From: Selaginella moellendorffii
Taxonomy: Eukaryota; Plantae; Lycopodiophyta
DNA length: 64,000 bases
Assembly (NCBI RefSeq): GCF_000143415.4
Contig: NW_003314316.1
Location: forward strand, 688,669 to 752,668
Reading direction: 5' to 3'
Made by a program: the position numbers and the translations under genes. Below are positions 7,217-61,878 of this stretch, in pieces. The notes beneath the pieces are model-generated. The model saw nothing but the letters and a program-made list of their open reading frames with translations, did not search any database and had not been told where the DNA came from. Within the stretch, counting starts at the first letter, position 1. The number at the start of each line of letters is the position of its first letter.

Positions 7217-7677
7217 AACCCCGTGGCCCTACGCGGGCCTCATAGGTACTCTCCCCGCCTTCCGCATTTGGGTGCTCTAGCCATGGGCTTAGAGCGAGGT
7301 TCCGTTAAGCCACGCCTGGTATCCAAGTAAGTAGTGCCACCCACACTTGGATTGGGAGCATCGACCATTCGATCTCCCGAGGGAACTAGAGCCGGCTCTT
7401 GAAAACTTCACCAAGCTACCCCGCTTGTCGGTCCGTATTCACTCTAGTTTTGGACTTCCCAGTGGTCAGTTCATCACCCAACACTGGGTATGGCCTTCCT
7501 GGGCCAAACTGGCCTTTCCTGGCCAAACTGGCCCTTCCTGGCTAAACTGGCTCCATTGGGCTCCAACCCCCACACTCTCCCTACTGTACTTTTGGAACCC
7601 CGGAGGCCCCCCCCCCCCCCCCCCCCCACCTAGGGGACGATCGCTTTGGGCTTTCACCCAACTGCCTGTATTAGTAT

Positions 7678-8002
7678 TCGGACTCGGACTCAGTCTCGGT
7701 CCCGGTTTCAAACTTGGACTCGGTCTCGGTCTCGGCTTCAGCCTCGGTCTCAGTCTCAGGTCCATCTCGGACTCCATCTCGGGTCCATCTCGGACTCCAT
7801 CTCGGACTCCATCTCGGGTCCATCTCGGACTCCATCTCGGACTCCATCTCGGGTCCATCTCGGACTCCATCTCGGACTCCATCTCGGGTCCATCTCGGGT
7901 CCATCTCGGACTCCATCTCGGGTCCATCTCGGACTCCATCTCGGACTCCATCTCGGGTCCATCTTGGGTCCATCTCGGACTCCATCTCGGGTCCATCTCG
8001 GA
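7678..8002. repeat. CTCGGW hexamer run followed by 11/12-bp minisatellite (~21 cores) in LTR
   Basis: Read directly. Confidence 0.95.
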
Positions 8003-11000: not shown

Positions 11001-13306
11001 TAACCAATTACCTGCACCTCTTGCTTAGTTGCCTCATAGTTGTCAAGTCCTACAACTCATTGCTGGTGCTTCCACACCTCCATCATTATCTGGGTCACCA
11101 CACTCTACCATCTACCTTCCAGTTTAGGCTATGCCATTCCCATTTCCATAAGGATTCCTTTCGCAAGGGGTTCTCATGAACCCATCAACATAACCTCAAG
11201 GTATCACACCTTGGGCCATTTGGTGTCTCCACACCATTGGCTCCACGAGCTTATCTCAATGACACTTCTTAATTGTGTCTAGGTCTTTGCCAAGACCAAT
11301 ACAGTGGTCTCTTATGCCAATTATCCATTAACACTGCAGCATAGAGTTCACACACAACTTTGTGTCAAAGTTGTTTTCTTTCGGGAAACTCCTTCCCACG
11401 ACTTTAGCATGGCACCTTCTGCCATCAATGAGATACACACTGCTCTCATGCTTGGATCTCAAGATCCTCCCCATCCTTCGTGGGGCACCACACACCTCAG
11501 TCCAAATGCTTTCCTCAAGCCCTTAGGATTATACCTTGACTCTATTGGAGTCATTCAACTTTTTGGACTTTGTTAATCCGATGACCCATGAGGTCCTACC
11601 TTTGAGGTGCTAGTTTATTAGAATACAACTCCTTGTATTCATATCCTACTCCAAGGACCATCTTTTGCAAGTGTTACTCCGACACTCGATTTTTTCTCTA
11701 GGGGCAACTTTCTACCCCTTAGGACCACTTGTCCATATGATGAGAATACCAACTCATCCTTTAAGTACACCCCCAACTCCTTGGGTTGTTCCAGCATTTA
11801 TTAGAGGTAGCCCCGGCTACCATTTCAAGTACTTGTGTCCTCTTCCGTATTTGACCTCCCACGGTCATCAATTCCGGTCTCAAATTTATAAGCACCAGCC
11901 CCAACTATATGAGGGTAATCTTGTGACTCCTTTATTGTTTTGGAGTCTGCATCTTGCCTGTGATCCCAACGATAGTTGTTTACTACAACTACATTAGCCC
12001 GTTTGCTGCGTCAAACGCTCATCTAGATCACATCCTCAACTCTCTGAGGAAACCCTTACACTGTTCCCAAGATCCCAAAGTCGTTCCATTATTGGCCCTT
12101 TTCTATCCACCACGTTGTCTACAAGTTCACACATGAACTATAATGGAAAGCCATGTCTTCCCGACCTGCTACTCCTCAAGGATAGGCCCACTCCTCGGAC
12201 CTTCCGATGCCAACACCAGTGGTGGTATACTTGAGCACCAATAAAAGTCGAACTAAGGAACAGCTCCGATACCAAGTTGTAAGCGATTAATTTTTCCATT
12301 TTACTTTAGTCACTTAACCGCACCTCCGACCACTTGGAGGAGTCTCATTCACAACCTCCATAAGTCCCAGTTAGGACTTGGGGCTTGCTAACCCCGAGAA
12401 TGGCATCTATGCCACTCAACCTTAGCACTTGGTCTAAGTGCTCCACGTGTCCGATCCCATGATCGACACCCCAAGGTGCCACTAACGTATCGGCCCATTA
12501 CGCTAAGGCCATGCCCATTTACCTTGGTCACACTGGTGGTCCAACACCACATGCATTCCAATCCTATCTCTCAAAGACTGGGTCATCCGTCCATGAGTGA
12601 TCATCCCAGATCCACTCCTTAACATCTTTAGGATGCCTACAGACATGGGGAATAGCTTTCGTCAATATCTCCGTTCTGGTCCTCACCAAGTCCCTTTCTA
12701 TCCTTGGCTGTGTTCGCCAACAACACCATTGGATCAAGGCCCACCGGCCCGACCACTAAGTCCCACTATCCTTTAGGACTTCCTCACCATGTGACTGTGT
12801 CCTTGGTCACCACACTAGAGGGCTACTCCTCTTCCTTTCCACAATCTGGGACTTTGGGACACCATTTCGGAACCCCGTGGCCCTACGTGGGCCTCATGGG
12901 TACTCTCCCTGCCTTCTGCATTTGGATGCTCTAGCCATGGGCTTAGAGCGAGGTTCCGTTGAGCCACGCCTGGTATCCAAGTAGGTAGTGTCACCCACAC
13001 TTGGACTGGGAGCATCGACCATTCGATCTCCCGGGGGAACTAGAGCCGGCTCTTGAACACTTCACCAAGCTACCTCGCTTGTCGGTTCGTATTCACTCTA
13101 GTTTTGGACTTCCCAGTGGTCAATTCATCACCCAACACTGGGTATGGCCTTCCTGGGCCAAACTGGCCCTTCCTAGCCAAACTGGCTCCACTGGGCTCCA
13201 ACCCCCACACTCTCCTTACTATACTTTTGGAACCCCCCGCAGCCCCCCCCCCCCCCCCCTGGAGGACGATCACTTTGGGCTTTCACCCAACTGCCTGTAT
13301 TAGTAT

Positions 13307-13735
13307 TCGGACTCGGACTCGAGCTTCAACTCGGACTCGGACTCGGTCTCGGTCCCGGTTTCGGACTCGAACTCCGTCTCGGTCTCGGTCTCGGTCTCGG
13401 GTCCATCTCGGACTCCATCTTGGACTCCATCTCGGGTCCATCTCGGACTCCATCTCGGACTCCATCTCGGGTCCATCTCGGACTCCATCTCGGGTCCATC
13501 TCGGGCCCATCTCGGGTCCATCTCGGGTCCATCTCGGACTCCATCTCAGACTCCATCTCGGGTCCATCTCAGACTCCATCTTGGACTCCATCTCGGGTCC
13601 ATCTCGGACTCCATCTCGGGTCCATCTCAGACTCCATCTCGGACTCCATCTCAGGTCCATCTCGGGTCCATCTCGGGTTCCATCTCGGACTCCATCTCGG
13701 GTCCATCTCAGACTCCATCTCGGGTCCATCTCGGA
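13307..13735. repeat. CTCGGW hexamer run plus longer 11/12-bp minisatellite (roughly 29 cores) in LTR
   Basis: Read directly. Confidence 0.95.
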
Positions 13736-13967
13736 CACTTCCACATGTCATGTGTTGGTCTTTTTGGGTCCCTTTTTGGAGCCTCGCTTATTGCTTGCTT
13801 CGTGCTCATTCCTCGAGCACTTCGTTGGGAGTTCCACTCCCGCTCTTGACTTTTCAAGTCAGAGCTTTTGGTCCAAACATGTTACGCTCGTTTGGCTCTC
13901 GCTTCGGCCACTACCACATGGCGCCCTTCCGGCTCCACTTTGGGGCTTAGGGATTTTGTGTCTCACA

Positions 13968-14932
13968 CTCAACTTCAAACAACTAAGTTAAACATCACTA
14001 TCCTCAACCAAGGCACAAGGTTATCTAGGCCAAATTAAGATCAGTGAGAGCTCACTACTCTCATATAATCTAATGAAATGCAAAGTGCAATCTGCTACTT
14101 AGCATAACACTACAGAAGAAAGGCACAAGGGTCACATTTCTAGAAAAGTGCAACAACCACTTTCCTACACCAACTGCAAACTGTATTTAACTCAATTGCC
14201 TTAACCCCAAAAGTCAATATCCCTTTCGAGCTGCATTATACAAACTATCTACTAAAATCTAAGTTAACCAAAATCAACTTTAACCCTTCACTAGTTTGTA
14301 CTGACTTATGAAAATGAAATGGTTTTCGAGCAAAATAATCAATAGATCAGGCATTGGAAAATCTTAAGAAAATTTGTGGAAAATTTTCCATCCTAGAGAA
14401 AAAATGACTCTCAATTTAAAAATATAAAATTTCAAAACTCAACCAACTTTCTCCTACTAACAACTTCATATAGGTTCACCTCAACATAAATTCTGATGAG
14501 CCAACAACATGCTTGTATTTCCAACATCCGACACTGATATTTGCAAAATTCAAAATGAACATCCAAGACTTGATCATAAAGACCATATCTTCAGATATCC
14601 ACATCACATTAACACTCTTTTTTAGCAACCTTTAAGATCCAATGTGAAGCTAAAACACTAACAAAAAAAATGACATGAAAAATCAAAGTCTAAGGAAAAT
14701 TCTTTATCACTCGAAACTACAATGCCATTTCCACTAACACAAATACTAGCAATATCAATGTCTTAACTTCACACCTTCTCTATCCAATAATCTATTTTAA
14801 GTGGTAACAAATAAACCAACAAGCTATAACAAGTTAATGTTATAACCCTTTCCAACACTTTATGGGCAAACCTTCAAAGAAACAAAGTACCAATTTAAGC
14901 TTAACATAATGGATCACTATTGAGAATCCAAT
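13968..14932. repeat. AT-rich dispersed repeat, inverted homolog of ~50686-51650 (unclassified TE relic)
   Basis: Reverse complement aligns by eye at both ends (e.g. 14821-14932 vs 50686-50797). Confidence 0.7.
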
Positions 14933-21707: not shown

Positions 21708-23876
21708 TCAGAAACTGGGCGTTCCGGACCAGCCATCGAGACACTTCAACAAGGGAGCAACAAGCTTCCCCTGGCAGATGGCATCGTAGACTTTGGTGAA
21801 GTCCTCGCCGGGCGTTCCACTCTTGGTCCCCATGAGCAGCGCAGTTCCAGCACCTTTCCTCACAAACTCATACAGCGGCGCCGAGGCACAGTCGAAGATC
21901 CGGTTTGGCAGCACCGCGTTACCGCTCTCGTACGCCTCCCTGGCCGCCGGGACCTCGACACTCAACGCCGCCTTGAGCTCCTCCTCGAACAGCCCGATCT
22001 TGTGCAACACCGAGGAGCTCGTCTCCTTCTCGTCCCCGATGTTCTTCAAGGCGTGCTCGACGAGAACCTGGCGGAGCTTCTGCATGAGCGGGTATCCAGC
22101 GCTGGCCGGATCATCGATGTAGGTGAAGACGTGCTGGTTGTCCACCACGGACAGGAGCTCCTTCTCGCAGAGGCGCGACGGCAGCAGCGCTCCGGCAGCC
22201 CCGGTGGTGAGCGTATTCTTAACGGCGTGAGAGACGGTCTGCTTCACGGTGGCTTGCAAGTTCTCCTCGAGGTGGCGGAGGTCGATGGCCTGGCACAATG
22301 CCACCAGATACGTCGACGACATGAGCTTGAGGATGTCGAGAGCTTCCACCGTCTTGCGAGCCGAGACGAGGCCGAGAGAGTTCACGTCCTGGTTGTGCTG
22401 CTCGGCGCTCTGGACGTGGGTGGTGACCGGGTTGGCCAGGTACTGGAGCTCCGAGGTGTACGAGGCCATGGCGATCTCGGCACCTTTGAAACCATAGTCC
22501 AAGCTTGGGTTGGATCCGCCGCTCAAGTTGGAAGGCAGGCCGTTGTTGTAGAAGTCATTGACGAGCTCCGAGAACTGCGCGAACATGAGCTTCCCGATGG
22601 CCGCCACCGCCAGGCGCAAGTTATCCATGGACACACCGATGGGCGTCCCCTGGAAGTTGCCGCCGTGGAGGGCCTTGTCGCGAGCAACGTCGATGATCGG
22701 GTTGTCATTCACGGAGTTGATCTCGCGCTGGATGGAGTGAGTGGCGTGGCGGATGACCTCGATCTGGGGGCCGAGCCACTGCGGGGAGGTCCGCAGCGCG
22801 TAGCGGTCCTGCTTGGGCTTCTTGAGGGAGTCGGTCTCGTGGAGCTTGGCGGCGGCCTTCATGTAGGAGCTCCCGGCGAGGACGTGCTCCATGATGGCGG
22901 CGGCCTCGATCTGGCCGGGGTGGTGCTTGAGCTTGTGCGTCAGCGGATCCGTGAACTCGGGCTTGCCTTGCATCGCCTCGCAGAACATCGCGGACAGGAT
23001 CTCGGCCAGGAGCGCCAGGACGTTGGCGTCGAAGCAGGCGATGGAGGCCACCGCCGCGCCGACTGCCGTGCCGTTGACGATGGCGAAGCCTTCCTTGGGC
23101 TGGAGCTCGAAGGGCTGCTCCACGCCGACGAGCTTCAGCGCCTCGGTGCTGTTGACGACCTTCCCGTCCGGCAAGACGGCGCGCGCGTTGGATCGGCCGC
23201 TGAGCAGCCCGGCAATGTAGCTGAGAGGGACGAGATCGCCGGAGGCAGTGATCGTCCCGCGGAGTGGGATCCGCGGCACGATGCCCGAGTTGACGAGCTT
23301 CTCCATGGCGGACAGGATCTCCCACCGGATGCCCGAGTAGCCCTGGAGGAGCGTGTTGGTGCGCACCAGCATCGCGCCGCGCGCGAAGGCCAGCGGGAGA
23401 ACGTTGGTCGAATCGTCGTCGCTGAAGATCCCGGCGTTGAGGACGCGGATGAGCTCGCGCTGGAGCCCCACGCCCTGGTTGATCCGGCGGTGGGAGGTGG
23501 CGCCGAATCCAGTCGTGACGCCGAGGATGTCGGTCCCCTTCATCGCATTGTCGAGTACCCAGTTGGAGCTCTCGTCCACCCTCTTCTTGGCGGCGGCGGA
23601 ATCCAAGCGTACCTGGGCACCGCGCTTGGCCACCGCCGCCACCTGGGCGATGGTGAGCGTGGTGCCCTCGATCGGGAAGCTGGGCTTGGCGGCGCCGTAG
23701 ACGGTGTGGGCCATCTCGCGGACCTCCTCGAGGTGGCTACCCGACATCGCCGCCGCGGCCTTCTTCCAGCTGAGGGGATCGGCGGTGTCGTAGCGCGGAG
23801 TGGAATTGGTGGGATCTGGCGACACCCGGACGAGCGGCGAGTAGGAGGAGGTTGTGTCGCTGCCGTTGGCCACCAT
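21708..23876 (-). CDS. PAL: Phenylalanine ammonia-lyase-like (MIO enzyme), intronless, 722 aa; catalytic Tyr replaced by Leu
   Basis: [17 protein letters not shown] (MIO), [41 protein letters not shown]; ATG at 23876. Confidence 0.95.
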
Positions 23877-25579: not shown

Positions 25580-27299
25580 TGTAAGCGACTAATTTTTTCC
25601 ATTATACTTTAGTCACTTAACCATACCTCCAACCACTTGGAGGAGTCTCATTCACAACCTCCATAAGTCCAATTCCGGACTTGGGGCTTGCTCACCCCGA
25701 GAAGGGCATCCATGCCCCTCAACCTTTGCACTTGGTCTAAGTGCTCCACGTGTCTGATCCCATGATCAACACTCCAAGGTACCACCAACATACCAGCCCG
25801 TTATGCTAGGCCATGCCCTTTCACCTTGGTCACATCAGTGGTTCAACACCACTTACATTGCAATCCCGTCTCTCCAAGACTGAGCCATCTGTCCATGAGT
25901 GGTCATCCTAGATCCACTCCTTAGCATCCTTAGAATGCCTGCAGACATGGGGAATAGCCTTCCTCGATATCTCCTTTCCAATCCTCACCAAGTCCCTTTC
26001 TGTCTATGGCTGTGTTCACCAACACTGCCACTAGATCAAGGCCCACAAGCCCGACCTCTAAGTCCCTCAATCCTTTGGGACTTCCTCACCATGTGACCGT
26101 ATCCTTGGTCACTGCACTAGAGGATTGCTCCTCTTCCCTTTTACCGTTTAGGACTTTGGGACAATATTTTGGAACACCGTGGCCTTACGCAAGCCTCATG
26201 GGTACTCTCCCCACCTCTCGCCTTTTGGTGCTCTAGCCATGGGCTTAAAGCGAGGTTCCGTTGAGCCACACCAGGTATCCAAGTAGGTAGTGCCACCCAC
26301 ACTTGGACTGGGAGCATCGGCCAGTCGATCTCCTGGGGGAACTAGAGCCGGCTCTTGAACACTTCACCAAGCTACCCCGCTTGTCGGTCCGTGTTCATTC
26401 TAGTCTTGGACTTCCTAGTGGGCAGCTCATCACCCGACACTGGGTCTGGCCTTCCTGGGCCAAACTGGCCTTTCCTGGCCAAACTAGCCTTTTCTGGCCA
26501 AACTAGCTCCACTATAATCCTCCCCCTACTATACTTTTGGAGCTCACCAAACCCCCCAAGGTCTGGGAGACAAACGCTTTGGGCTTTCACCCTCTCAGAC
26601 TCGAACTCGGACTTGGACTCGGACTTGGACTCGGACTCGGACTTGAACTTGGACTTGGACTCGGACTCGAACTCGGACTCGGTCTCGGCCTCGGCCTCGG
26701 TCCTGATCTCGGTCTTGATCTCGGTCTCGGTCCCGGTCTCGGTCTTGACCTCGGAGTCCATCTCGGGTCCTTCTTGGACTCCATCTCGGATTCCATCTCG
26801 GGTCCATCTCGGACTCCATCTCGGACTCCATCTTGGGTCCGTCTCGGACTTAATCTTGGATCCATCTCGGGTCCATCTCGGGTCCATCTCGGACTCCACC
26901 TTGGACTCCACCTCGGACTCCATCTCGGACTCCATCTTGGACTCCATCTCGGGTTTATCTCGGACTCCGTCTTGGGTCCTTCTTGGGTCCACCTCGGACT
27001 CCACCTGACTCCATCTTGGGTCCTTCTCGGACTCCACTTCGGACTCCAACTTGGGTCCATCTTGGACACTTCCATGTGTCATGTGTTAGTCCTTTTTGGG
27101 TCCTTTTTTGGAGCCTCGCTTATTGCTCGCTTTGTGCTCATTCCTCAAACACGTTTTTGGGAGTTCCACTTCTGCTCTCAACCTTTCAAATCGGAGCTTT
27201 TAATCCAAATGTGTTACACTCATTTGGCTTTTGCTTCGGCCACTACCATGTGACGCCCTTCCGGCTCCACTTTGGGGCCTAGGGATTTTGTGTCTCACA
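25580..27299 (-). mobile_element. Solo LTR of family A (1720 bp) with minisatellite ~26595-27068
   Basis: TGTAAGCG...TCTCACA termini, no flanking PBS/PPT; possible decayed TSD GATGG/AATAG. Confidence 0.88.
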
Positions 27300-27709
27300 A
27301 ATAGCTCATGGGCAGCATTGGGCATTCTTGTTCATAATTTCACTAGTATCTTTAAGAGTGTGTTTTTGATATTGTTTTAGTTTCTATAGGACATTGAGGA
27401 ATGTACATACACATTCATCTTTCAAGTGGCATTTATTTTACACAACTCACTAGAAAGTGAAATCTTGGGTTGTGCTAATGATACCCCACAGCATCTTTTA
27501 TGAATCCACCCCAAAGATAGTGACAATCAAGTGCAAGATACCTACCCTTCAAGGGCATCTTGTGGAATCTAACAACTTCCACAAACGATTTGCTGGGCTC
27601 AAGATTGTGACTTTGTGGTAAAAAGCATAGTAAATCTTCCACCAGCTTTTGAAAGGACATAATACTGGCACTGGGAATCTTGTCCCGTCAAATGTAGGTC
27701 TTTGATTCC

Positions 27710-29277
27710 ATGCCAGATCAGATCCTAGCATCCTGGAATTCCTTGCTGGCAAACATGGCATCTTGTTCCTCTTTAGATGACACAAAGAGGGTGTTTGATT
27801 CCATGAAGAGAAGGAATCTTTTCTCTTGGACGGTGATGCTAACGGGATATGCCCGAACTGGGGATCTGGAGGGCATGAACGCTTTGTTTGGTGCTATGCC
27901 CGAGAGGAATCTGATGTCGTGGACGGTCGCGATTAGTGGGTTTGGTTCCAACGGCAAGATCCAGCAAGCAAAGAGTCTGTTCGACTCGATGCTAGAGTGG
28001 AATCTTGTCGCCATGAATGCGATGCTCGCGGCATTTGTCCAGGAGGGCTATCTCCAAGAGGCCAAATCCTTTTTCGATTGGATGCCTGAGACGAATCTAA
28101 TTTCCTCGCAACGTTGCTGCGAGCTTACGCTCAGGAATCACAAATCCTCGAGGCAAAGCGCTTGTTTGATTCAATGCCGGAGAAGAATCTCGTCACCTGG
28201 ACGACGATGGTAGCGGCATTTGGCCAGGATCCTCTTCTTCTGAGTGAAACGAGAGATCTCTTTGATCGGATGCCGGAGCACAACATTGTATCACGGACAG
28301 TGATGCTGATGTCATACGGTCGCGCTGGCCACGTCACTCAAGCACAAGGCATCTTTCATCAAATGCCTGGACGAGACCTGACAGCGTGGAATGCCATGCT
28401 GGTAGCATTTGCCCAAGATGGGCAAATCTTACACGTAATTAACTTGTTTGGGCAAATGCCTGTGCATGACGTAGGATCCATGTCAATCATGGTAGACACG
28501 CTGGCACGGTGTGGGAAGCTTGAGGAAGCAAAAGAAATATTTGATCATGTCCGCGGCTGGTGCATCTCCTCTTGGACGTCGATGATCTTTGCATATACCT
28601 CGTTCGGGTATTTTGAAGAAGCAGAGGCTTTATTTTATACAATGCCCGAAGTAGATACCATAGCCCAAAACGCGCTTATCTCGTCTTTAGCACTCAATCG
28701 TAAACTTGCTAGTGCAGTTGGTGTTTTTCACAGGGCTAACCAGAGAGATGTAACAACCTGGAACACCGTTCTTTCTGCATTTGCCCGTGATGGAAATCTG
28801 CAAGAAGCTGAAAAAGTCTTCCAATCGATGCCGGAGCGCGATCTCGTGAGCTGGAATTCAGTGCTGGTGGCATATGCGGGGCAAGGCAAGCCAGCCCAAG
28901 CGATCGGATTCTTCTACGAGCTTCAGCAACAGTGGATTCCCAGCGCAATCAGCGTTGTTTGCTTCTTGGTTGCCTGCGGCCGGGTGGGGAACTGCGCACT
29001 GGGCATCTCTTGCTTCAGATCCATGACACGGGACTTCGGATTGGAGGCAACCAAGCAGCACTACAGCTGCGTGATCGATCTCCTGTGCCGGGCAGTCGTT
29101 TTGGCGAATGCCCAAGCCGTGATTGCTGAAATGCCCAGTGTTCCTGATCTTGTCGATTGGCATTGCGTGCTCGCGTTTTGTTCCAGTGACAAAAACGTTG
29201 AACAAGGAAGAGTGTGTGCCATGTCTGTTCTTGAGATGGAACCATACAACGCTGCTGCTTACGTCTCGTTGTCATAA
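27710..29277 (+). pseudogene. PLS-class PPR protein pseudogene (1-nt deletion at ~28108, earlier stop)
   Basis: TCCTCGCAACG vs TCCTCGACAACG in intact paralog; two overlapping ORFs of PPR repeats. Confidence 0.85.
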
Positions 29278-29339
29278 ACATTGATCTAAAACTCCCGCCA
29301 AGATTTAAACTTTTGGCTGACGTGGCGCTCATTTATTGG

Positions 29340-31200
29340 TGGAAGGAACCCTAGAAAGGGATCACTGGAATTCGCGAAGATCCCAGGAGCAGCAAGGAGA
29401 AGGAGCAAGAACAGTCTTCTCCTTCCTCCATGGCCGTCAACAATGCGTTGCTGGAAAAGGTGTCGTTGTCATCTTCTTCGTCGGCTTCCGGTGGTGGTGG
29501 GAATGACAGCCGGGGAAAGCTCCGGGGGCATGATTCCTGTGGAGCCACCGTCACCTCCCATTCCACCAGACACCCACGTCACGCGCTCACACAAAAAATC
29601 GTCCAAGCACAACTCTGGATCGAGCGAGGTGGCCTGAGCCGGAGCTGGGGTGGTTCCAATCTCGGGAGGAATTTGCCTTCTCCTCGTGAGATCTGCGAGG
29701 AGCTTGACAAGTTCGTCATCGGCCAGGAACGAGCCAAAAAGGTGTGTGTTCTTGCTTTTATCTTACGTTTAGTTGTTCTTCTCTTCCAGGTGTTGTCTGT
29801 GGCAGTCTATAATCACTACAAACGGATTTACTTTGAGAGTTTAAGAACTGAAGCTGCCAAAGCCGTTGTTATGGGAGAGTACGCAACATTTTTTCTATTC
29901 CTATACCAACAAGTGCTTGCATCGTTTTTCAGATCAGAGGAATTTGACGAGAGCATAGCGTCGAATGCCAATGCGTCTGGAGACGATGAAGTTGAGCTTG
30001 AGAAGAGCAACGTGCTGTTCCTCGGTCCTACTGGCTCTGGTACCGATGCTTTACACAAGATTCCATGCAAGCTCATCTTGATTTTTTGCAGGGAAGACAT
30101 TGTTAGCTAAGTGCTTGGAAAGTTTTCCTTCATAATTGCAGATGCTATGACGCTCACACAAGCAAGATTAAATCAACAAATTTTCTAAGATGCAAGGAAA
30201 TTTTGTTTGAGCTTGCTTCATTTATAAAGTATTGGCTCCTTCTTAGGCAGGATATGTTGGAGAATCTATCCTTCATAAACTTCTTGTGGTATGTTTGGGG
30301 TACTATTACCAAACCTGGTCGTAAGCACTTTGTCTTTCACTAGGCGGCCGAGTTCAACGTAAATGCAGCTCAGCCTACATTGACGAAGTCGACAAAATTA
30401 CCAAAAAGGTACGATCAAAATCCATTTTTCTTTTTTTCTTTCGGCCTGACTTTTCTCCAGTGCAGTCAGAAAGCCTCAACATTGGAAGGGACGTGAGCGG
30501 TGAAGGTGTTCAACAAGCACTGCTCAAAATTTTGGAAGGAACTGTAAGGAGCTGAAATACTATTCTCATTGCAAAGACTTCTCGGGTAATCAACTCGTTC
30601 AGTGAGTGTGTACAGATTGTTAACGTCCCTGAGAAAGGAGCTAGGAAGCATCCTCGTAGTGATCACACCCAGGTTTGCTGTGGGGTTCTATCTTTCAGCT
30701 TTGATTTATTTAACCATGCCTACCTTCAGATTGATACGAAAGAAATCCTTTTTATATGCGGGGGAGCTTTTGTGGATCTGAACGATTGCAGAGAGGTTAG
30801 TGGTTGCAAAGATTTTAGTTATCGTTTTTATCTAAAGCAATATCCTAGGAGACAAGATTCGTCTATCGGTTTTGGGGCACCAGTTAAGAAACAACGGTGG
30901 TACAACGAGTGCGACGGTTGCTTCATCTTCGCTTGAAAAGGTTTGGTCCACTTTACGGCTTTAAAATTAAGAGATCTCTCTTTTCTCTTGATTAGGTCGA
31001 GAGCAGTGATGTCATTTCATATGGATTGATACCAGAGTTTATTGGATGCTTTCCAGTGATTGTGAGCCTTTCTGCTTTGAACGAGGATCAAATGACTTAT
31101 ATTTTACAGCATAACCTTTGCAAGCGGGCAGGTTCTCATGACGCGTAAGAACGCATTACACCAAGCTCTTTGCAGTGAACGACGTAAGAGATGTCTCAAA
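29340..31200 (+). pseudogene. CLPX: ClpX pseudogene (left duplicate): start region deleted, many micro-deletions, 3' truncated
   Basis: Collinear with 55600-58115; [16 protein letters not shown] and IDEVDKI recognisable but frames broken. Confidence 0.88.
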
Positions 31201-32149
31201 ACCAACTCAAGATTGATCATGGCTTGTTCCAATTGGAATCAAGATGAGAGCTCTTTCACTTTGTTCGTTTATCAGCACTCATCATCTCATTCTTTTGATC
31301 GATCGCGCGATCAAAAAGGGAATTTTGGAATTCTGGAACTCAAATCTGGGAGTGAAATTGCGATCAATGCAGGCTGTTCTATGTGCGCTAAGTAGCGGCG
31401 AGAAAACCCACGAGCGCGATTTTGCTAAGCAAATCCCAGGATCACGTAAAAAGCACCAAGAACACCGGGCATTCAAATGGAGGGAGGAGGAATTCTCTTA
31501 CCTGGACGATTCGGTGAGCTCGACGGTAGGACGTGCAAGCGGAGCAGAGTGGATTCTTGGCGAGGCAAACACAAGACCTGGCTCTCAGGGCGATCGAAGC
31601 GATTCGAATTCCAGCGATCAAAAGAGATGGATCGATCGATGGACGGGGAAAGAAGAGGAAGAAGGCAAACGTTTAATAACAAGATTGATAGAAATTAACA
31701 TCACACAAGACACACCCACACAGCACACACATTACATTGCATCAAGGCGGCTTGGGGCCGCCGATGCCGTCCATTCGTTTCATCCGACGGCCGCCAACTC
31801 CTCGGAATTCCCTTCCTCAGAAACACCGTCGGATTCTAGCGGCCATCCAACGGCCCACAGCGAAGAGCTTGCATGGCTGTCCAATGCCGCATGCCGACAA
31901 GATGCTTTTCCCTAACCTAAATATAGAGTAATTAGCACTATACAAATATTAGTATATATTATCGTAGTTGTACAATTGGATTTCACATCATCCTTTTTTC
32001 TCAAAATGATGAAAAACTATCAATATTCTTTCATAAATGGGCCAAGATTTAAAAAAACATTAAGAGGAGGTATCAATGGATCTATAAATGGTGTTAGTTA
32101 TTCATAATCCCTTTGTATAAAATGTTTCAACTATTGCATATACACAATT

Positions 32150-47654: not shown

Positions 47655-49826
47655 TCAAAAACTGGGCGTTCCGGACCAGCCATCGAGACACTTCAACAAG
47701 GGAGCAACAAGCTTCCCCTGGCAGATGGCATCGTAGACTTTGGTGAAGTCCTCGCCGGGCGTTCCACTCTTGGTCCCCATGAGCAGCGCAGTTCCAGCAC
47801 CTTTCCTCACAAACTCATACAGCGGCGCCGAGGCACAGTCGAAGATCCGGTTTGGCAGCACCGCGTTACCGCTCTCGTACGCCTCCCTGGCCGCCGGGAC
47901 CTCGACACTCAACGCCGCCTTGAGCTCCTCCTCGAACAGCCCGATCTTGTGCAACACCGAGGAGCTCTCGTCCCCGATGTTCTTCAAGGCGTGCTCGACG
48001 AGAACCTGGCGGAGCTTCTGCATGAGCGGGTATCCAGCGCTGGCCGGATCATCGATGTAGGTGAAGACGTGCTGGTTGTCCACCACGGACAGGAGCTCCT
48101 TCTCGCAGAAGCGCGACGGCAGCAGCGCTCCGGCAGCTCCGGTGGTGACCGTGTTCTTAGCGGCGTGAGAGACGGTCTGCTTCACAGTGGCTTGCAAGTT
48201 CTCCTCGAGGTGGCGGAGGTCGATGGCCTGGCACAATGCCACCAGATACGTCGACGACATGAGCTTGAGGATGTCGAGAGCTTCCACCGTCTTGCGAGCG
48301 GAGACGAGGCCGAGAGAGTTCACGTCCTGGTTGTGCTGCTCGGCGCTCTGGACGTGGGTGGTGACCGGGTTGGCCAGGTACTGGAGCTCCGAGGTGTACG
48401 AGGCCATGGCGATCTCGGCACCTTTGAAACCATAGTCCAAGCTCGGGTTGGATCCGCCGCTCAAGTTGGAAGGCAGGCCGTTGTTGTAGAAGTCATTGAC
48501 GAGCTCCGAGAACTGCGCGAACATGAGTTTCCCGATGGCCGCCACCGCCAAGCGCAAGTTATCCATGGACACACCGATGGGCGTCCCCTGGAAGTTCCCG
48601 CCGTGGAGGGCCTTGTCGCGAGCAACATCGATGATCGGGTTGTCATTCACGGAGTTGATCTCGCGCTGGATGGAGTGAGTGGCGTGGCGGATGACTTCGA
48701 TCTGGGGGCCGAGCCACTGCGGGGAGGTGCGCAGCGCGTAGCGGTCCTGCTTGGGCTTCTTGAGGGAGTCGGTCTCGTGGAGCTTGGCGGCGGCCTTCAT
48801 GTAGGAGCTCCCGGCGAGGACATGTTCCATGATGGCGGCGGCCTCGATCTGGCCGGGGTGGTGCTTGAGCTTGTGCGTCAGCGGATCCGTGAACTCGGGC
48901 TTGCCTTGCATCGCCTCGCAGAACATCGCGGACAGGATCTCGGCCAGGAGCGCCAGGACGTTGGCGTCGAAGCAGGCGATGGAGGCCACCGCCGCGCCGA
49001 CTGCCGTGCCGTTGACGATGGCGAAGCCTTCCTTGGGCTGGAGCTCGAACGGCTGCTCCACGCCGACGAGCTTGAGCGCCTCGGCGCTGGTGACGACCTT
49101 CCCATCCGGCAAGACGGCGCGCACGTTGGATCGGCCGCTGAGCAGCCCGGCAATGTAGCTGAGAGGGACGAGATCGCCGGAGGCAGTGATCGTCCCTCGG
49201 AGTGGGATCCGCGCCACGATGCCCGAGTTGACGAGCTTCTCCATGGCGGACAGGATCTCCCACCGGATGCCCGAGTAGCCCTGGAGGAGCGTGTTGGTGC
49301 GCACCAGCATCGCGGCGCGCGCGAAGGCCAGCGGGAGAACGTTGGTCGAATCGTCGTCGCTGAAGATCCCGGCGTTGAGGACGCGGATGAGCTCGCGCTG
49401 GAGCCCCACGCCCTGGTTGATCCGGCGGTGGGAGGTGGCGCCGAATCCAGTCGTGACACCGTAGATGTCGGTCCCCTTCATCGCATTGTCGAGTACCCAG
49501 TTGGAGCTCTCGTCCACCCTCTTCTTGGCGGCGGCGGAATCCAAGCGTACCTGGGCGCCGCGCTTGGCCACTGCCGCCACCTGGGCGATGGTGAGCGTGG
49601 TGCCCTCGATCGAGAAGCTGGGCTTGGCGGCGCCGTAGACGGTGTGGACCATCTCGCGGACCTCCTCGAGGTGGCTACCCGACATCGCCGCCGCGGCCTT
49701 CTTCCAGCTGAGGGGATCGGATGTGTCGTAGCGCGGAGTGGAATTGGGGAGGCAGAGCGTGGGATCTGGCGACACCCGGACGAGCGGCGAGTAGGAGGAG
49801 GTTGTGTCGCTGCCGTTGGCCACCAT
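47655..49826 (-). CDS. PAL: Phenylalanine ammonia-lyase-like (MIO enzyme), intronless, 723 aa, catalytic residues intact
   Basis: [37 protein letters not shown]; ATG at 49826. Confidence 0.97.
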
Positions 49827-53597: not shown

Positions 53598-53907
53598 TTT
53601 TAATGTTGTTTTAGTCTCTATAAAACATTAGGAAATATATATACACATTCATCTTTCAAGTGACATAAATCTTATGTTGTGTTGATGATAGCTCACACCA
53701 TCTTTTATAAATCCACCCCAAAGCAAAAATCTAGATAGTGACAATCAAGTGTGGGACATGTGGAATCTAACAACCTCTGCAAATGATTTGCTAGGCATAA
53801 GATTGTGACTTTGTGGTAAAAAGCATAGTAAATCTTCCACCAGCTTTTGAAAGGACATAATACTGGCATTGGGAATCTTGTCCTGTCAAATGTAGGTCTT
53901 TGATTCC

Positions 53908-55488
53908 ATGCCAGATCAGATCCTAGCATCCTGGAATTCCTTGCTGGCAAGCATGGCATCTTGTTCCTCTTTCGATGACACAAAGAGGGTGTTTGATTCC
54001 ATGAAGAGAAGGAATCTTTTCTCTTGGACAGTGATGCTAACGGGATATGCCCGAACTGGGGATCTGGAGGGCATGAACGCTTTGTTTGGTGCTATGCCCG
54101 AGAGGAATCTCATGTCATGGACGGTCGCAATTAGTGGGTTTGGTTCCAACGGCAAGATCCAGCATGCAAAGAGTCTGTTCGACTCAATGCTAGAGTGGAA
54201 TCTCGTTGCCATGAATGCGATGCTCGCGGCATTTGTCCAGGAAGGCTATCTCCAAGAGGCCAAATCCTTTTTCGATCGGATGCCTGAGACAAATCTAATT
54301 TCCTCGACAACGTTGCTGCGAGCTTACGCTCAGGAATCACAAATCCTCGAGGCAAACCGCTTGTTTGATTCAATGCTGGAGAAGAATCTCGTCACCTGGA
54401 CGACGATGGTAGCCGCATTTGGCCAGGATCCTCTTCTTCTGGGTGAAACAAGAGATCTCTTTGATCGGATGCCAGAGCACAACATTGTGTCATGGACAGT
54501 GATGCTGACGTCATACGGTCGCGCTGGCCACGTCACCCAAGCACAGGGCATCTTTCATGAAATGCCTGGACGAGACCTGACAGCGTGGAATGCCATGCTG
54601 GCAGCATTCGCCCAAGATGGGCAAATCTTACACGTAATTAACTTGTTTGGGAAAATGCCTGTGCATGACGTAGGATCCATGTCAGTCATGGTAGACACTC
54701 TGGCACGGTGTGGGAAGCTTGAGGAAGCAAAGGAAATATTTGATCAGGTCCGCAGCTGGTGCATCTCCTCTTGGACGTCGATGATCTTTGCATATACCTC
54801 GTTCGGGTATTTTGAAGAAGCAGAGGCTTTATTTTATACAATGCCCGAAGTAGATACCATAGCCCAAAACGCATTTATTTCATCTTTAGCACTTAATCGT
54901 AAACTTGCTAGTGCAGTTGGTGTTTTTCACAGGGCTAACCAGAGAGACGTAACAACTTGGAACATAGTTCTTTCTGCATTTGCCCGCGATGGTCATCTGC
55001 AAGAAGCGGAAAAAGTCTTCCGATCGATGCCGGAGCGCGATTTCGTGAGCTGGAATTCAGTGCTGGCGGCATTTGCGGGGCAAGGCAAGCCAGCCCAAGC
55101 GATCGGATTCTTCTTCGAGCTTCAGCAGCAGTGGATCCCCAGCGCAATCAGCGTTGCTTGCTTCTTGGTTGCCTGCGGCCGGGCGGGGAACTGCGTACTG
55201 GGCATCTCTTGCTTCAGATCCATGGCATGGGACTTCGGATTGGAGGCAACCAAGCAGCACTACAGCTGCGTGATCGATCTCCTGTGCCGGGCAGTCGTTT
55301 TGGCGAATGCCCAAGCCGTGATTGCTGAAATGCCCAGCGTTCCTGATCTTGTAGATTGGCATTGCATGCTCGCGTTTTGTTCCAGTGACAAAAACGTTGA
55401 GCAAGGAAGAGTGTGTGCCATGTCTGTTCTTGAGATGGAACCAAACAACGCTGCTGCTTACGTCTCGTTGTCACAAACATTGATCTAA
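53908..55488 (+). CDS. PLS-class pentatricopeptide repeat protein (526 aa) ending in a partial E domain, no DYW
   Basis: ~31-aa repeats (FD.MPE.NLVSWT.M), HYSCVIDLLCRA, LEMEPNNAAAYVSLS. Confidence 0.88.
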   Translation: MPDQILASWNSLLASMASCSSFDDTKRVFDSMKRRNLFSWTVMLTGYARTGDLEGMNALFGAMPERNLMSWTVAISGFGSNGKIQHAKSLFDSMLEWNLVAMNAMLAAFVQEGYLQEAKSFFDRMPETNLISSTTLLRAYAQESQILEANRLFDSMLEKNLVTWTTMVAAFGQDPLLLGETRDLFDRMPEHNIVSWTVMLTSYGRAGHVTQAQGIFHEMPGRDLTAWNAMLAAFAQDGQILHVINLFGKMPVHDVGSMSVMVDTLARCGKLEEAKEIFDQVRSWCISSWTSMIFAYTSFGYFEEAEALFYTMPEVDTIAQNAFISSLALNRKLASAVGVFHRANQRDVTTWNIVLSAFARDGHLQEAEKVFRSMPERDFVSWNSVLAAFAGQGKPAQAIGFFFELQQQWIPSAISVACFLVACGRAGNCVLGISCFRSMAWDFGLEATKQHYSCVIDLLCRAVVLANAQAVIAEMPSVPDLVDWHCMLAFCSSDKNVEQGRVCAMSVLEMEPNNAAAYVSLSQTLI

Positions 55489-55688
55489 ACTCCCCGCCAC
55501 GATTTGAAATTAGGGTGTAATTTTGAAAGCCCTAATTCTGATGTGGCGCGCATTTATTGGTAGTGGGAATGGATGCACCAATTGGCTTATTCTTACTTTG
55601 GAAGGAACCCTAGAAAGGGATTCTCCACGATGCTAGCACCGAGGCGATAGCGCGGCGCCTGGGCCTTGATTCCTGCCCTCCTCCAACG

Positions 55689-58619
55689 ATGATCGTGAGA
55701 TTCAAGCCCCTGGTAGGCGATTCGCGACAATGCAGCACCAAAATCCTCACCGCCTCGCTGAAATCGCTGCTCCGGTTCTGCGAGGGCAAGAGCACGCACT
55801 GCAGATCGCTGCCATGGCGGATGCCGTCTGGAAGCCTCATAATCTCCAGCCGGGGCAAGAATCTAAGCGGCCATTCGACGCCCGCGATCTTGATCAAGCG
55901 CAGGAATTTCGAGAGTGGGAGTAGCAGCGGCGATTCGTCATCGTCGATCAAAACGGAGACGCGGTGCCCGTCCTGCGATGCCAAGATCTCGATTCCTGTC
56001 TCGTCCGGATCCTCGTCGTCGGCAACGTATCTCCACGATATCTTCGGCAAGCGCGGCTACTCCTTCGAGCAGGCTTGCCCTCACTGCGGGGCAATGTGTT
56101 CCATCGGGCCACTGGAATTCGCGGCCGGATGTGCGCAAGATCCCAGGAGCAGCAAGGAGAAGGAGCAAGAACAATCTTCTCCTCCTCGTCCTTCCTCCTC
56201 CATGGACGATCAGCTCCGCGGCTGGGTGAGGAAGATGATCAACAATGCATTGCTGGAGAAGGTGTCGTCGTCATCGCCATCGTCTTCTTCTTCGTCGGCT
56301 TCCGGTGGTGGTAAGAATGACGGTGGAAGGGACTCCAGGGAAAGCTCCGGGGGCATGATTCCTGTGGAGCCACCGTCACCTCCCATTCCACCAGACACCC
56401 ACGTCACGCGCTCACTCAAGAAATCGTCCAAGCACAACTCTGGATCGAGCTACTCGCTGGGTGACACGAGCCGGAGATGGGGTGGTTCCAATCTCGGGAG
56501 GAATTTGCCTTCTCCTCGTGAGATCTCCGAGGAGCTTGACAAGTTCGTCATCGGCCAGGACCGAGCCAAAAAGGTGTGATGGTGCTCGTGTTCTTGCTTT
56601 TATCTTACGTTTGGTTGTTCTTCTCTTCCAGGTGTTGTCTGTGGCAGTCTATAATCACTACAAACGGATTTACTTTGAGAGTTTAAGAAATGAAGCTGCC
56701 AAAGCCGCTTCTATGGGAGAGTACGCAACATTTTTTCTATTCCTATACCAACAAGTGCTTGCATCGTTTTTCAGATCAGAGGAATTTGATGAGAGCGTAG
56801 TGTCGAATGCCAATGCGTCTGGAGACGATGAAGTTGAGCTTGAGAAGAGCAATGTGCTGTTGCTCGGTCCTACTGGCTCTGGTACCGATGCTTTACACAA
56901 GATTCCATGCAAGCTCACCTTGATTTTTTGCAGGGAAGACATTGTTAGCTAAGTGCTTGGCAAAGTTTGTGAATGTTCCCTTCATAATTGCAGATGCTAC
57001 GACGCTCACACAGGCAAGATTCAATCAACAAATTTTCTAAGATGCAAGTAAGGAAATTTTGTTTGAGCTTGGTTCGTTATAAAGTATTGGCTCCTTAGGC
57101 AGGATATGTTGGAGAAGACGTGGAATCTATCCTTCATAAACTTCTTGTGGTATGTTTGGGATACTATTACCTGGTCCTAAGCTTTTTGTCTTTCACTAGG
57201 CGGCCGAGTTCAACGTAAATGCAGCTCAGCAAGGAATAGTCTACATTGACGAAGTCGACAAAATTACCAAAAAGGTATGATCAAAATCCATTTTTCTTTC
57301 TTTCTTTCGGCCTGACTTTTCTCCAGTGCAGTCAGAAAGCCTCAACATTGGAAGGGACGTGAGCGGTGAAGGTGTTCAACAAGCACTGCTCAAAATTTTG
57401 GAAGGAACTGTAAGGAGCTGAAATTCTATTCTCATTGCAAAGGCTTCTCGGGTAATCAACTCGTTCAGTGAGTGTGTACAGATTGTTAACGTCCCTGAGA
57501 AAGGAGCTAGAAAGCATCCTCGTAGCGATCACACCCAGGTTTGCTGTGGGGTTCTATCTTTCAGCTTTGATTTATTTAACCATGCCTACTTTCAGATTGA
57601 TACGAAAGAAATCCTTTTTATATGCGGGGGAGCTTTCGTGGATCTGGAGAAAACGATTGCTGAGAGGTTGGTGGTTGCAAAGACTTTAGTTATCGTTTTT
57701 ATCTAAAGCAATATCCCAGGAGACAAGATTCGTCCATCGGTTTTGGGGCACCAGTGCGAGCCAATATAAGAAATAACGGTGGTACAACCAGTGCGACGGT
57801 TGCTTCATCATTGCTTGAAAAGGTTCGCTTTACGGCTCTAATATTTAGAGATCTCTCTTTTCTCTTGAGCAGGTCGAGAGCAGTGATCTCATTTCATATG
57901 GATTGATACCAGAGTTTATTGGACGCTTTCCAGTGATTGTGAGCCTTTCCGCTTTGAACGAGGATCAACTTGTCCAGGTTAGTGAAATGAGTTATACTTT
58001 ACAGCATACTTTTTCCTACTTTTGCAAGCGAGCAGGTTCTCATGACGCCTAAGAACGCATTGGGCAAACAGTACACCAAGCTCTTTGCAATGAACGACGT
58101 AAGAGATGTCTCAAAAATTTCCTCCTCCATGTGCCGATCCGCTTTCTTTCTCTGTTAAGGTGAAACTTCACATTACCACTTTAGGACTGAGAAGGATCGC
58201 TCAAAAGGCTATGGTCAAAAACACAGGTGCCCGTGGCTTGCGTTCTATCCTGGAGCAGCTCCTCACGGAGGCAATGTTCGTTGTGAGTCGCTAACTTTTT
58301 CTTCGAATTGGAAATTCATACAGACTTTGTTATTCCAAGGTTCCCGACGGTGATATTGGAGCTGCCAAGATTGATGGAGTGGTGATTGACGGTGCTGCCG
58401 TTGGCACACCGGATGGCCAACCAGGTGCCGCCAAGATTCTTCGCGGAGACAACGCGCTCGAGATGTTTGTAGCCAAGCACCTTGAAAACGAAGAAAAGGT
58501 CGGAAGCTCTCAAAACTTTTACGTTTTCTCATCTCATCTCCCAGAGATTTCACGAGAAGAAATCCAGAGACTCTGGAGCAGCATTGGTGGTGGTAGCCGG
58601 AGGGAACAGGCATTGTTGA
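55689..58619 (+). CDS. CLPX: Mitochondrial-type ClpX AAA+ chaperone, multi-exon with short introns
   Basis: CPSC/CPHC zinc motif, [57 protein letters not shown]; stop TGA inferred at 58617-58619. Confidence 0.92.
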
Positions 58620-59005: not shown

Positions 59006-61878
59006 TCACACAGACCTCACTTCACCACCGCCTGGCCTTTGCTTGTCCGCCGAGAAATCGCGTGACTTCTCGTACACGTCGCCAAAGGGGAGATCAAACT
59101 GGCCGCCACCATCGTTGTCAGCGTGAGTGCTCGTGAAAGAACTCCGTGACGGTCTTCGCAGCCAGTCACTGTCCTGGTCCTCCTCACTCTCGCTGTCCTG
59201 CGGTAAGGTTGCTCCCCGAAACACTGGAGGCTGGAAGATGCTCTCCCCGTTCATGGCCGAGCCACCAGCTCGCCGTGCCCACCATCGACTCTCGGTAGCA
59301 GCCCGGTCGCTTGTAGTCGCCTTTACCAGATTCCTGCCAGCTTCAGCATATCGCTGCAGCTCTCCGGTATTGCTTTCGCCACCACTCTCACGTTCAACCT
59401 GTTCCCCCATTGGTATCGCGATCTCGTAGCCTTGCACGGACTTGGACGTGTAGTACTGGTCGAGCCAGTACATCTGATCCACCTGGACTAAGTTGCTGTT
59501 GGACAGTAGGACGAAGTCGTTTCTCGTGCTCTGCCTCATGCTCGCGCGGAGAAGTGGATGCCGAGAACTCATGCCGTCCCTGAAGATTCCTGTCTGGTGC
59601 AGGATGGTGGATGACAATGAAGGGATCGACATTGGGTGCGTTGCGGGATCTTCGTGGCGCATTCGGAACTGAGCAAGAAGATTTAGGAACTGTTTTCCTT
59701 TGGCGTCGGGTTCCCAGTTTGGATAGTTGCTCTTGAAGCTGCAGCACGCAGTTAGCACAACTGATAAAAGTGATGTTTCGGTTACCTTAGAAACGACTTT
59801 TCCATCTTTCCTTGGTTGCTCCTTCGGTCTTTGGCTGTAAAACACGGGGAACCATACTTCATGTTCCCGTGGTGCTCAAAATCAAATACTGCAAGGCTGC
59901 AAACATCGCCTACGCCAGATAAATTGACAGTGAAGTCCTGAACAAACTGCAGCACATCATCGACACACTGCACACGGAGAGCTAACATCAATGCACGATA
60001 AACATGCCATATAGAAGTACCTCTGGGAGGAGAACAATAAGGATAAAAGGCGTGACGAATATTGAAATCATTTCCTCCAGCAGCATCACACCCGTATACT
60101 GAAAAGACGTTAGGAATTAGCCTAGACCGATTCATGAGCTTAGCCTCCACAAACCTGAAATAATTTTTCAAATTCCAGCCGTATTCTGATCGTATACTCG
60201 GCTCCCCTCCAATGTTTTGGCATGTAATGCGTATGCTGTGCTACATATCTCATGAAGCCTTCTGGATCAAAGACTTGGTTTTCGTCGGCTGTGCATTGCT
60301 TGCTGATTGCAGTTATAGTGCCGAAAACAGCGGCCATCCATAACAAGTTGCGCCCAAAGAGCTAAGAGCAAAAATAAAGAGTCAAAACTTATTCAAATTA
60401 GAGCACAGTCTTACCTGAGCTTCAAGGAGAGATTCATCCAAAAACGCGATAATAATTAGCACGGCTGCTAGTCCGCCGGAGACAAAAGACACGAACTTTG
60501 CAACCTTTGAAACAATTGGAGACGGAAACTGTTTAACGTACTCGACTGCCGGTTTGTAGCTCGCATTAAGCCTTTGATTAAACATATGCTCCAGCTGCGT
60601 GCAGCACACACCACGTTTAAGATCGTTGAGCATTTAGAAACAAAGAAGTTTACCTCGTTGAACTCACGGAATGTCCACTTTGCTAAGTTGGACCACCGGC
60701 GGGAGACAGCAGAGCTTGGGTGATTGTAAAACTGCTCGGCATGCCTCAGGAAGAAGAATACCAGCATAAATATTATCAAGAAGGGAGACAACAAGAGCAT
60801 GCACAGCCCGAATGTTCTCAAGCGCTTCTTTAACCGATGAGGATTGTTAAGAAAGTCTCTTTGAATGGAGAAGCGCCTGAAAGAACGGGAACATTGTGAT
60901 TAACAGACCCACACTGAACACTTCGTTTTACCTGTCAAACATATACTGAAGTATGCACCAGTTTAGACTCCACTCGAGGGTCTTACTGAGAAACAGCCGC
61001 TTCCGCACACCCTGAGGACCACGGGCAACAGTCAGCCCGACTCCCGGCACCCAGTGTGGAAGAGGAAGCGCAAAAACGCCCTTGTTCACCATCCCAATCA
61101 GATAATTCTCCTTTCGCATGATGCGCATCACAATGTCGTGAGCCGAGAGATGCCGAACTATACACAGCCTCTGCTGCACAATTCTCTCCAGAACCACCGG
61201 CCACAAGGTGGTCTGTATCTCGTGTTCCGTAAGGCACAAACTGCAAGAATACAAGCAAACAAGTGAATCCACAGTAGAGTTTGCAATGATAGAGACAGAC
61301 CTTGTGTGGTAAAAGTCCCGGATCTCCAGAGTTTCCTTGAGCTGTGTGAAGAACCTCAGGAAACAAAAGATCCAGTAGAGCGAGAACAGAACCAAGTACG
61401 TGACGACCATAAACCTGTAGAACGTGAGAGGCTGTAGCGGATGCTCGTAGAGCGCCTCCTTTGACAAGTCGCAAGGAGCAGTCCCAGCTTCCGCCGCAGC
61501 AATCCCACACTTGGCAGTCCGGAGGCCATGCCAGTTGACGAAGAGCAAGAAAAACCCCGAGAACAAGATGGTGAAGGCCAGGCACAGCAGCTCCAGAACC
61601 CACTGCGTGACAATGCACCAGAACCCCTGCTCGCGATGGTACTCATAGAGCCGCACGAAGAAACGATCCAAGTCCGAGACCGCATCAAACTTGAGGCTCT
61701 CCTCCTTCATAAAATCCACCGGACTGGAAGAATCATCGCCGGGTGGCGGTGCCGGCGGCGCCCCTGGCAACTGCTGGTAATCGTTAAGCTCCACGTCTCC
61801 TTGCCTCTCCACCATGAATCCTTCGTGAATTCCTTCATTTCTATGCATACTACGCCCTGTGCTAATCACCTCGTACAT
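59006..61878 (-). CDS. ATG9: Autophagy-related protein 9, multi-exon
   Basis: DLDRFF.RLY.Y, AKCG, LSAHDIVMRIMRKENYLIGM, RRWSNLAKWTFREFNE, HTHYMPKHW, GVGDVCS, KMEKSFL. Confidence 0.93.

Follow-up and report, generated by a model that had tools for sequence, protein, structure and literature searches.

The window analyzed here is a stretch of 64,000 nucleotides of Selaginella moellendorffii DNA (assembly GCF_000143415.4, contig NW_003314316.1, positions 688,669 to 752,668 of the forward strand). It contains a repeat unit of approximately 26 kb, each unit carrying one PAL gene and one PPR gene. The two PAL genes lie on the minus strand and are referred to as copy 1 and copy 2; residues are given in parsley PAL numbering unless a protein's own numbering is indicated. 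The features considered below are the following:

47655 to 49826, minus strand: PAL coding sequence of copy 1 ("type B"), an intronless and uninterrupted open reading frame of 723 amino acids plus stop
49461 to 49466, minus strand: Ile109 and catalytic Tyr110 of copy 1, codons ATC-TAC (TAC at 49461 to 49463), in the inner lid loop
49404 to 49421, minus strand: own residues 136 (Thr to Ile, parsley 124) to 141 (Glu to Gly, parsley 129) of copy 1, as compared with its paralogue
49380 to 49382, minus strand: Val at parsley 137 in copy 1, codon GTC (TTC, Phe, in the canonical paralogue), in the wall facing the para position of the substrate ring
49176 to 49184, minus strand: Ala-Ser-Gly triad that forms the MIO cofactor in copy 1, own residues 215 to 217, intact
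49023 to 49025, minus strand: Phe at parsley 256 in copy 1, codon TTC (CTC, Leu, in the canonical paralogue), in the wall facing the ortho position
21708 to 23876, minus strand: PAL coding sequence of copy 2 ("type C"), 722 amino acids plus stop, with Ile109, Val137 and Phe256 as in copy 1
23523 to 23525, minus strand: Leu in place of catalytic Tyr110 in copy 2, codon CTC (TAC in copy 1 and in the canonical paralogue), a difference of two adjacent bases

Copy 1 is identical to a RefSeq S. moellendorffii protein (P0121) that is annotated simply as PAL. Its residues 78 to 550 matched the Pfam family PF00221 (Lyase_aromatic) with an E value of 6.6e-152 and 506.9 bits, for a cut-off of 27.3, and its residues 35 to 721 were aligned by phmmer to parsley PAL (1W27) with 1026 bits. 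The match to the Taxus aminomutase was much weaker, at approximately 650 bits, and fungal PAL and bacterial PAL, TAL and HAL likewise scored far below 1W27. All features of the MIO family are present, namely, the PF00221 profile, the Ala-Ser-Gly triad (as ASGDL at own residue 215) and the inner-loop Tyr, and the alignment to plant PAL (EC 4.3.1.24) is full length, including the plant/fungal C-terminal shielding domain and the catalytic residues. Judged by overall sequence and catalytic residues, copy 1 is thus a member of the MIO lyase family and of the plant PALs, and its fold is certain because of its homology to 1W27. A single-sequence AlphaFold2 model (pLDDT of 34) was too poor for a fold search or for pocket geometry.

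In the alignment to 1W27, the altered positions of copy 1 correspond to S109, F137 and L256 of parsley PAL; Ile109, Tyr110, Val137 and Phe256 are its own residues 121, 122, 149 and 268. The preliminary description of this DNA had reported Val and Phe codons in both copies, and these were recovered as GTC (49380 to 49382 in copy 1 and 23442 to 23444 in copy 2) and TTC (49023 to 49025 and 23085 to 23087). Translation likewise bore out the reading KEGFAIVNG in both copies, which also read the same 13-residue stretch. Around these substitutions, the MIO triad ASG, L134, L138, L206, V259, N260, Q348 and Y351 are unchanged in copy 1, as are R354, N384, F400, K456, I460, E484, N487 and Q488, in agreement with the earlier statement that the equivalents of MIO, Y351, R354, F400, I460 and E484 are kept. 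Two further derived changes, at positions 124 and 129, lie between the Tyr110 loop and the helix bearing L134, F137 and L138.

The pocket of copy 1 does not carry the PAL, TAL/PTAL or PAM signature. In place of the Phe137-Leu138 pair and Leu256 of PAL, it has Val137-Leu138 and Phe256; the His found at position 137 in TAL and PTAL is Val; and the equivalents of A77, I79, C89, L97 and Cys107 of the Taxus PAM are Thr, Ile, Thr, Gly and Val, of which only the Ile matches. Compared with canonical plant PAL (parsley PcPAL1, PDB 1W27 and 6F6T), to which it is approximately 72% identical over residues 35 to 721, and with the neighboring canonical S. moellendorffii protein XP_002982907, to which it is 98% identical, copy 1 has the same MIO triad, Tyr110 loop, Y351/R354 and C-terminal part including the shielding domain but differs in carrying Val137, Phe256 and Ile124 instead of Phe, Leu and Thr, as well as Gly129.

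In the pocket map of parsley PAL, L256 faces the ortho substituents of the substrate, L134 the meta substituents, and F137 and I460 the para substituents (PMC9226071). The F137V substitution in parsley or Arabidopsis PAL increases the conversion of p-methoxy-, p-CF3-, naphthyl- and styryl-alanines (PMC6055856, PMC7595223, PMC9226071), whereas the wild type barely converts 4-methoxy-, 4-CF3-, naphthyl- and styryl-alanines (PMC6055856, PMC7595223). These engineered PcPAL and AtPAL variants have the single substitution of the para-facing wall in common with copy 1, but their residue 256 is still Leu or, to admit ortho-substituted substrates, the smaller Val, whereas copy 1 enlarges it to Phe; no report of F137V combined with Phe256 was found in the literature searched on engineered PALs. 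Position 137 likewise alters substrate choice in grass PTAL and bacterial TAL (sorghum SbPAL1, 6AT7; Rhodobacter TAL), which bind the phenol through His137, whereas copy 1 has Val137 and retains Leu138. The Taxus PAM (PDB 3NZ4 and 4V2R) resembles copy 1 in the Ile beside the catalytic Tyr and in the non-Phe residue at the 137 equivalent; it is unlike copy 1 in the three other loop residues and in Cys107/Leu227, and its overall similarity is far below that of PAL (PMC9002059, PMC11374720). The pocket of the Taxus enzyme is formed by L104, C107, L108, L227 and I431, and its balance between lyase and mutase activities is set by A77, I79, C89 and L97 of the inner loop (PMC11374720, PMC9002059). 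The background on which the preliminary description drew, namely, selectivity at 137, admission of para-substituted or bulky substrates by F137V, L256 lining the pocket, and Cys107 and Ile79 in Taxus, is accordingly in line with the literature (PMC9226071, PMC6055856, PMC11374720, PMC9002059). The PALs of S. moellendorffii were described as biochemically uncharacterized as of 2022 (PMC9262799), and our literature searches returned no biochemical work on them and no mention of their Val137/Phe256 residues.

A cluster at 90% identity groups copies 1 and 2 with other PALs into 15 members, all from S. moellendorffii and located on two haplotype scaffolds. Three types can be told apart by the residues at positions 109, 110, 137 and 256:

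Type A (canonical): Thr, Tyr, Phe, Leu; XP_002982907 and XP_002981929
Type B: Ile, Tyr, Val, Phe; copy 1 of the window and its allele
Type C: Ile, Leu, Val, Phe; copy 2 of the window, XP_002982908 and XP_002981930

A type A copy shares the scaffold with copy 1, from which it differs by 14 substitutions and two short indels, and on the second haplotype the genes are ordered A, C, B within approximately 50 kb. All seven copies across both haplotypes have full-length open frames, and the pocket changes are not sequencing noise, because they recur in five gene copies on the two haplotype scaffolds. The type A states at positions 124, 137, 217 and 256 are common to the PALs of S. kraussiana, Isoetes, Diphasiastrum, hornwort, moss, liverwort and gymnosperms, and most of these outgroup PALs also agree with type A at residue 129. 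Since the outgroups (S. kraussiana, Isoetes) match type A at all pocket sites, the pocket states of types B and C are derived. The dS between types A and B is approximately 0.057, and between haplotypes it ranges from 0.013 to 0.038; on these sequence comparisons, the B/C states are also young.

The array is a mosaic. Codons 90 to 268 group B with C, whereas the sequence from codon 269 through the 3' untranslated region groups A with C and leaves B apart; because the grouping switches at codon 269, one of the types is recombinant, and several copies have received the segment with the pocket. Widespread gene conversion homogenizing the coding sequences was also considered and rejected, since the well-aligned flanks differ by 3 to 5% between types, similar to the dS of approximately 0.05, so that only the mosaic is supported. 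The promoter regions of the types are approximately 80% identical, with many gaps, at positions -1000 to -300.

Several other elements were observed in and around the array. The PPR-repeat gene was duplicated together with the 26-kb unit (27418 to 31728 and 53667 to 58116), with open reading frames at 28114 to 29277 and 53908 to 55488, the first being shorter (387 versus 526 amino acids). A fragment of 140 amino acids annotated as "PAL-like" (XP_024543626, L001:3864-4286) precedes the canonical type A gene by approximately 6 kb; its match to the 3' end region of the window PALs marks it as the remnant of an additional PAL copy of the array. Dispersed direct repeats of several families (85 to 100% identical, at least 300 nt) occur upstream of copy 2 at 183 to 8268, 12506 to 14001 and 25808 to 27333 and are probably transposable-element copies. 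An open reading frame at 60928 to 61878 (minus strand) matches the autophagy protein ATG9 over its N-terminal half (PF04109, E value of 9.5e-52) and is presumably one exon of a neighboring gene. A biosynthetic gene cluster was rejected, since a Pfam scan of the nine other long open reading frames of the window returned only the PPR genes and the ATG9 fragment; P450, methyltransferase and acyltransferase genes were not seen among them. The earlier suggestion that the enzyme feeds specialized metabolism thus found no neighboring pathway genes among these nine frames.

The rarity of the pocket residues was evaluated in 119 other top homologues, which span lycophytes, mosses, liverworts, hornworts, ferns, gymnosperms and angiosperms, and in 91 diverse representatives of 50% clusters. 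Position 256 is Leu in 119/119 homologues and in approximately 85 of the 91 representatives; Phe occurs in none of either set (0/119 and 0/91, hence 0/210 sampled relatives). Position 137 is Phe in 117/119 and Val in 1/119 homologues and is highly variable among the 91 representatives (H, F, M, L, S, G, C, V and others; Val in 3/91), which agrees with the literature (PMC9226071). The lone close homologue with Val137 is P0096, a metagenome-derived PAL of 748 amino acids with Met138 and the normal Leu256, and on sequence it is an independent natural variant of the F137V kind. Thr occupies position 124 in 117/119 homologues, and Gly at position 129 occurs in 0/119. At position 109, Ile is the commonest residue (56/119), ahead of Thr (40/119) and Ser (17/119), and its carriers are mostly moss sequences annotated as PAL. 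By these counts, Ile109 is uninformative, Val137 is rare yet not unique, Phe256 is the genuine oddity, and the combination of Val137 and Phe256 occurs in no other sampled relative. The preliminary description had counted S109I among the notable pocket changes, which these frequencies contradict, and Ile109 was rejected as a PAM-like sign for the same reason. Its broader proposal of a PAL-family enzyme with a remodeled aryl pocket holds, the remodeling being derived, lineage specific and unusual, and the residues that it flagged for checking in lycophyte and bryophyte PALs are not common (Val in 1/119, Phe in 0/119).

Selection was evaluated in codon alignments of the seven copies (two A, two B and three C), in which 75.7% of sites are nonsynonymous. 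Private changes of type A amount to 1 nonsynonymous and 14 synonymous (P = 3e-8 versus neutrality). Those of type B amount to 0 to 1 nonsynonymous and 7 synonymous (P = 5e-5 versus neutrality, in a test of eight changes only); the extra nonsynonymous change, D241G, is in the other allele and falls outside the 0:7 count of the strict filter. This indicates, at the sequence level, that type B has been under purifying selection since the haplotypes split. Type C, with private changes of 7:8, is below neutral (P = 0.015) and relaxed relative to A and B together (Fisher P = 0.004), with an omega of approximately 0.28 versus 0.02 in type A. Fixed differences between A and B plus C comprise 7 nonsynonymous and 5 synonymous changes and one two-codon indel, all within codons 90 to 268; this 7:5 ratio exceeds that seen within types (Fisher P = 0.03) but does not differ significantly from neutral (P = 0.18). 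The ratio on the type C-specific branch is 5:1. Overall, these small counts suggest that the protein first changed in a burst, after which constraint returned on B and was relaxed on C. Of the seven stem changes, four affect positions with at least 95% conservation among other PALs, a class that makes up 45% of the protein. Clustering of the substitutions (4/7 stem changes in 29 residues, P = 0.006 over the whole protein) was discounted as a sign of selection, because the mosaic confines the stem changes to codons 90 to 268; for all 14 A-versus-B changes, P is 0.13.

Copy 2 is 98% identical to copy 1 at the protein level and shows zero mismatches to XP_002982909 (P0131) over the aligned positions. 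The motif GTDI had been reported for both copies and is present in both, but copy 2 continues as GTDILG, so that the catalytic Tyr110, kept in copy 1 and in 117/119 homologues, is replaced by Leu. Its MIO triad is retained as ASGDL at own residue 211; the catalytic inner-loop Tyr is absent. Mutants of the Tyr110 equivalent are inactive according to the part of PMC9002059 that cites Röther 2002, and because this Tyr is lost, copy 2 is very unlikely to be a working lyase. It is best described as a drifting recombinant sister that has lost the catalytic base and probably has no lyase activity. Both copies had been put forward as candidate enzymes, and this stands for copy 1, with its catalytic residues kept and its purifying selection, but not for copy 2. 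At least three full-length open copies of the Tyr110-less type C exist on the two haplotypes (window 21708 to 23876; L002:10001-12181; L005:3001-5181). Given these open copies and an omega that is relaxed yet below neutral, a role of type C as a retained noncatalytic PAL subunit is a possibility.

As for expression, none of the 20 runs listed, from at least seven named studies, contained more than 0.56 of the 31-mers of copy 1, approximately the expectation from a 2%-divergent type A transcript alone. In three studies, the Logan contigs that map to the gene end at its untranslated regions; they encode Leu256 (A>G at 49025), have Thr217 (own residue 230) and include the type A insertion of two codons. 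Canonical type A is the copy seen transcribed in these RNA-like assemblies. No type B transcript was found among the RNA-like assembled contigs, a weak negative, as contigs drop rare variants.

Type B also carries V556A, K558N and L560V (window 48147 to 48161, own residues 556 to 560), which precede a Thr matching, by numbering offset only, the Thr545 phosphorylation site of French bean PAL (PMC4156402). K558N is also found in most type C copies. A Lys or Arg three residues before that Thr is kept in 118/119 homologues, and Leu560 in 119/119. Phosphorylation regulation of type B may differ from that of other PALs.

Taken together, we consider that copy 1 has about an even chance of being an active ammonia-lyase whose pocket has gained room toward the para position and lost room toward the ortho position, with a shifted preference among aryl-alanines. 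We infer its activity, the direction of the substrate shift and any role in the plant; the sequence, ancestry, rarity and selection pattern on which this builds are observed. By ancestry, copy 1 is a young, lineage-specific paralogue of the ordinary S. moellendorffii PAL that arose by tandem duplication, type A persisting on the scaffold. The stem branch leading to the window copies acquired seven amino acid changes in codons 90 to 268, among which F137V, L256F, T109I and T124I lie near the aryl pocket and the lid loop of Tyr110. From every catalytic residue being kept and the later purifying selection, copy 1 is most likely an active MIO-dependent ammonia-lyase. F137V is predicted to open the pocket at the para substituent of the ring and L256F to narrow the ortho side; for this reason, preference may have moved from plain L-Phe to para-substituted aryl-alanines (Tyr, O-methyl-Tyr or similar), with the matching cinnamate as product. 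The changed substrate suggested earlier for copy 1 is plausible, though tempered by the probably dead sister copy, the undetected type B transcripts and the commonness of Ile109. Against this reading, the 7:5 ratio of the stem also fits simple relaxation, the loss of Tyr110 in the sister copy fits a lineage that was already dispensable, Val137, in contrast to the His of true TAL and PTAL, cannot donate a hydrogen bond to a phenol, and neither pathway partners among the nine other long frames of the window nor type B contigs were found. An extended version, in which B acts on para substrates (e.g., Tyr or O-methyl-Tyr) through Val137/Phe256 with no His switch and type C copies are maintained pseudoenzymes that enter and modulate PAL heterotetramers, seems to us improbable.

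The same observations can be read in other ways. Copy 1 might be an ordinary PAL isoform in which the swap at 137 and 256 is roughly volume neutral, L-Phe is still the main substrate and divergence concerns mainly regulation or expression. This would agree with the unchanged catalytic and carboxylate/amine-binding residues, with purifying selection as strong on B as on the canonical copy, with the differing promoters (approximately 80% identity at -1000 to -300), with the natural variability of position 137 across the family (PMC9226071) and with V556A, K558N and L560V near the putative Thr545 equivalent, which hint at regulatory rather than catalytic divergence (PMC4156402). However, the conservation of Leu256, never replaced by Phe in close or distant relatives, makes a neutral change unlikely, the parsley F137V mutant has an altered substrate scope (PMC6055856, PMC7595223), and expression of B went undetected among the assembled contigs, so that we regard an ordinary isoform as a serious but rather unlikely alternative. 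Redundancy would account for other parts of the pattern: the B/C lineage, unconstrained after duplication, would have accumulated damaging changes at conserved sites, with catalysis already gone from copy 2 and copy 1 less far along toward loss. The stem (7:5) and type C branch (5:1) ratios are indistinguishable from neutrality, the share of stem changes at conserved sites (4/7) is close to that of such sites overall (45%), type C combines the loss of Tyr110 with its raised omega, and RNA-like assemblies show only type A. Nevertheless, all seven copies are open and full length on both haplotypes, the private changes of B are 7 synonymous to 0 to 1 nonsynonymous, and even type C has fewer nonsynonymous changes than expected under neutrality (P = 0.015); decay of both duplicates is therefore clearly unlikely.

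The proposal of a phenylalanine or tyrosine 2,3-aminomutase yielding a beta-amino acid fares worst, and we give it hardly any credence. The Ile before the catalytic Tyr does recall Ile79 of the Taxus PAM, and T124I adds a hydrophobic residue near the end of the inner loop (PMC9002059). Nevertheless, copy 1 is PAM-like at only one of the four distinguishing loop residues (A77, I79, C89 and L97), as the preliminary description itself had noted for the other three; that one residue recurs in 56/119 homologues, for the most part PAL-annotated sequences of mosses; the pocket lacks both Cys107 and Leu227 of PAM, Val and Phe taking their places (PMC11374720); and the match to parsley PAL far exceeds that to the Taxus enzyme (1026 versus approximately 650 bits).

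Phenylpropanoid metabolism begins with PAL, whose aryl pocket is nearly frozen across land plants. If copy 1 proves silent or ordinary, it would be merely a recent duplicate of an annotated gene. Returning to the preferred reading of a lyase with a remodeled pocket, its pair of Val137 and Phe256 is, in the literature searched, unexplored by engineers, who shrink these residues. The locus holds three states approximately 2% apart, namely, an ancestral enzyme, a constrained copy with a remodeled pocket and a copy without the catalytic base. The array thus amounts to a natural experiment on the evolution of substrate choice in MIO enzymes, one that could be dissected by a few reversions.
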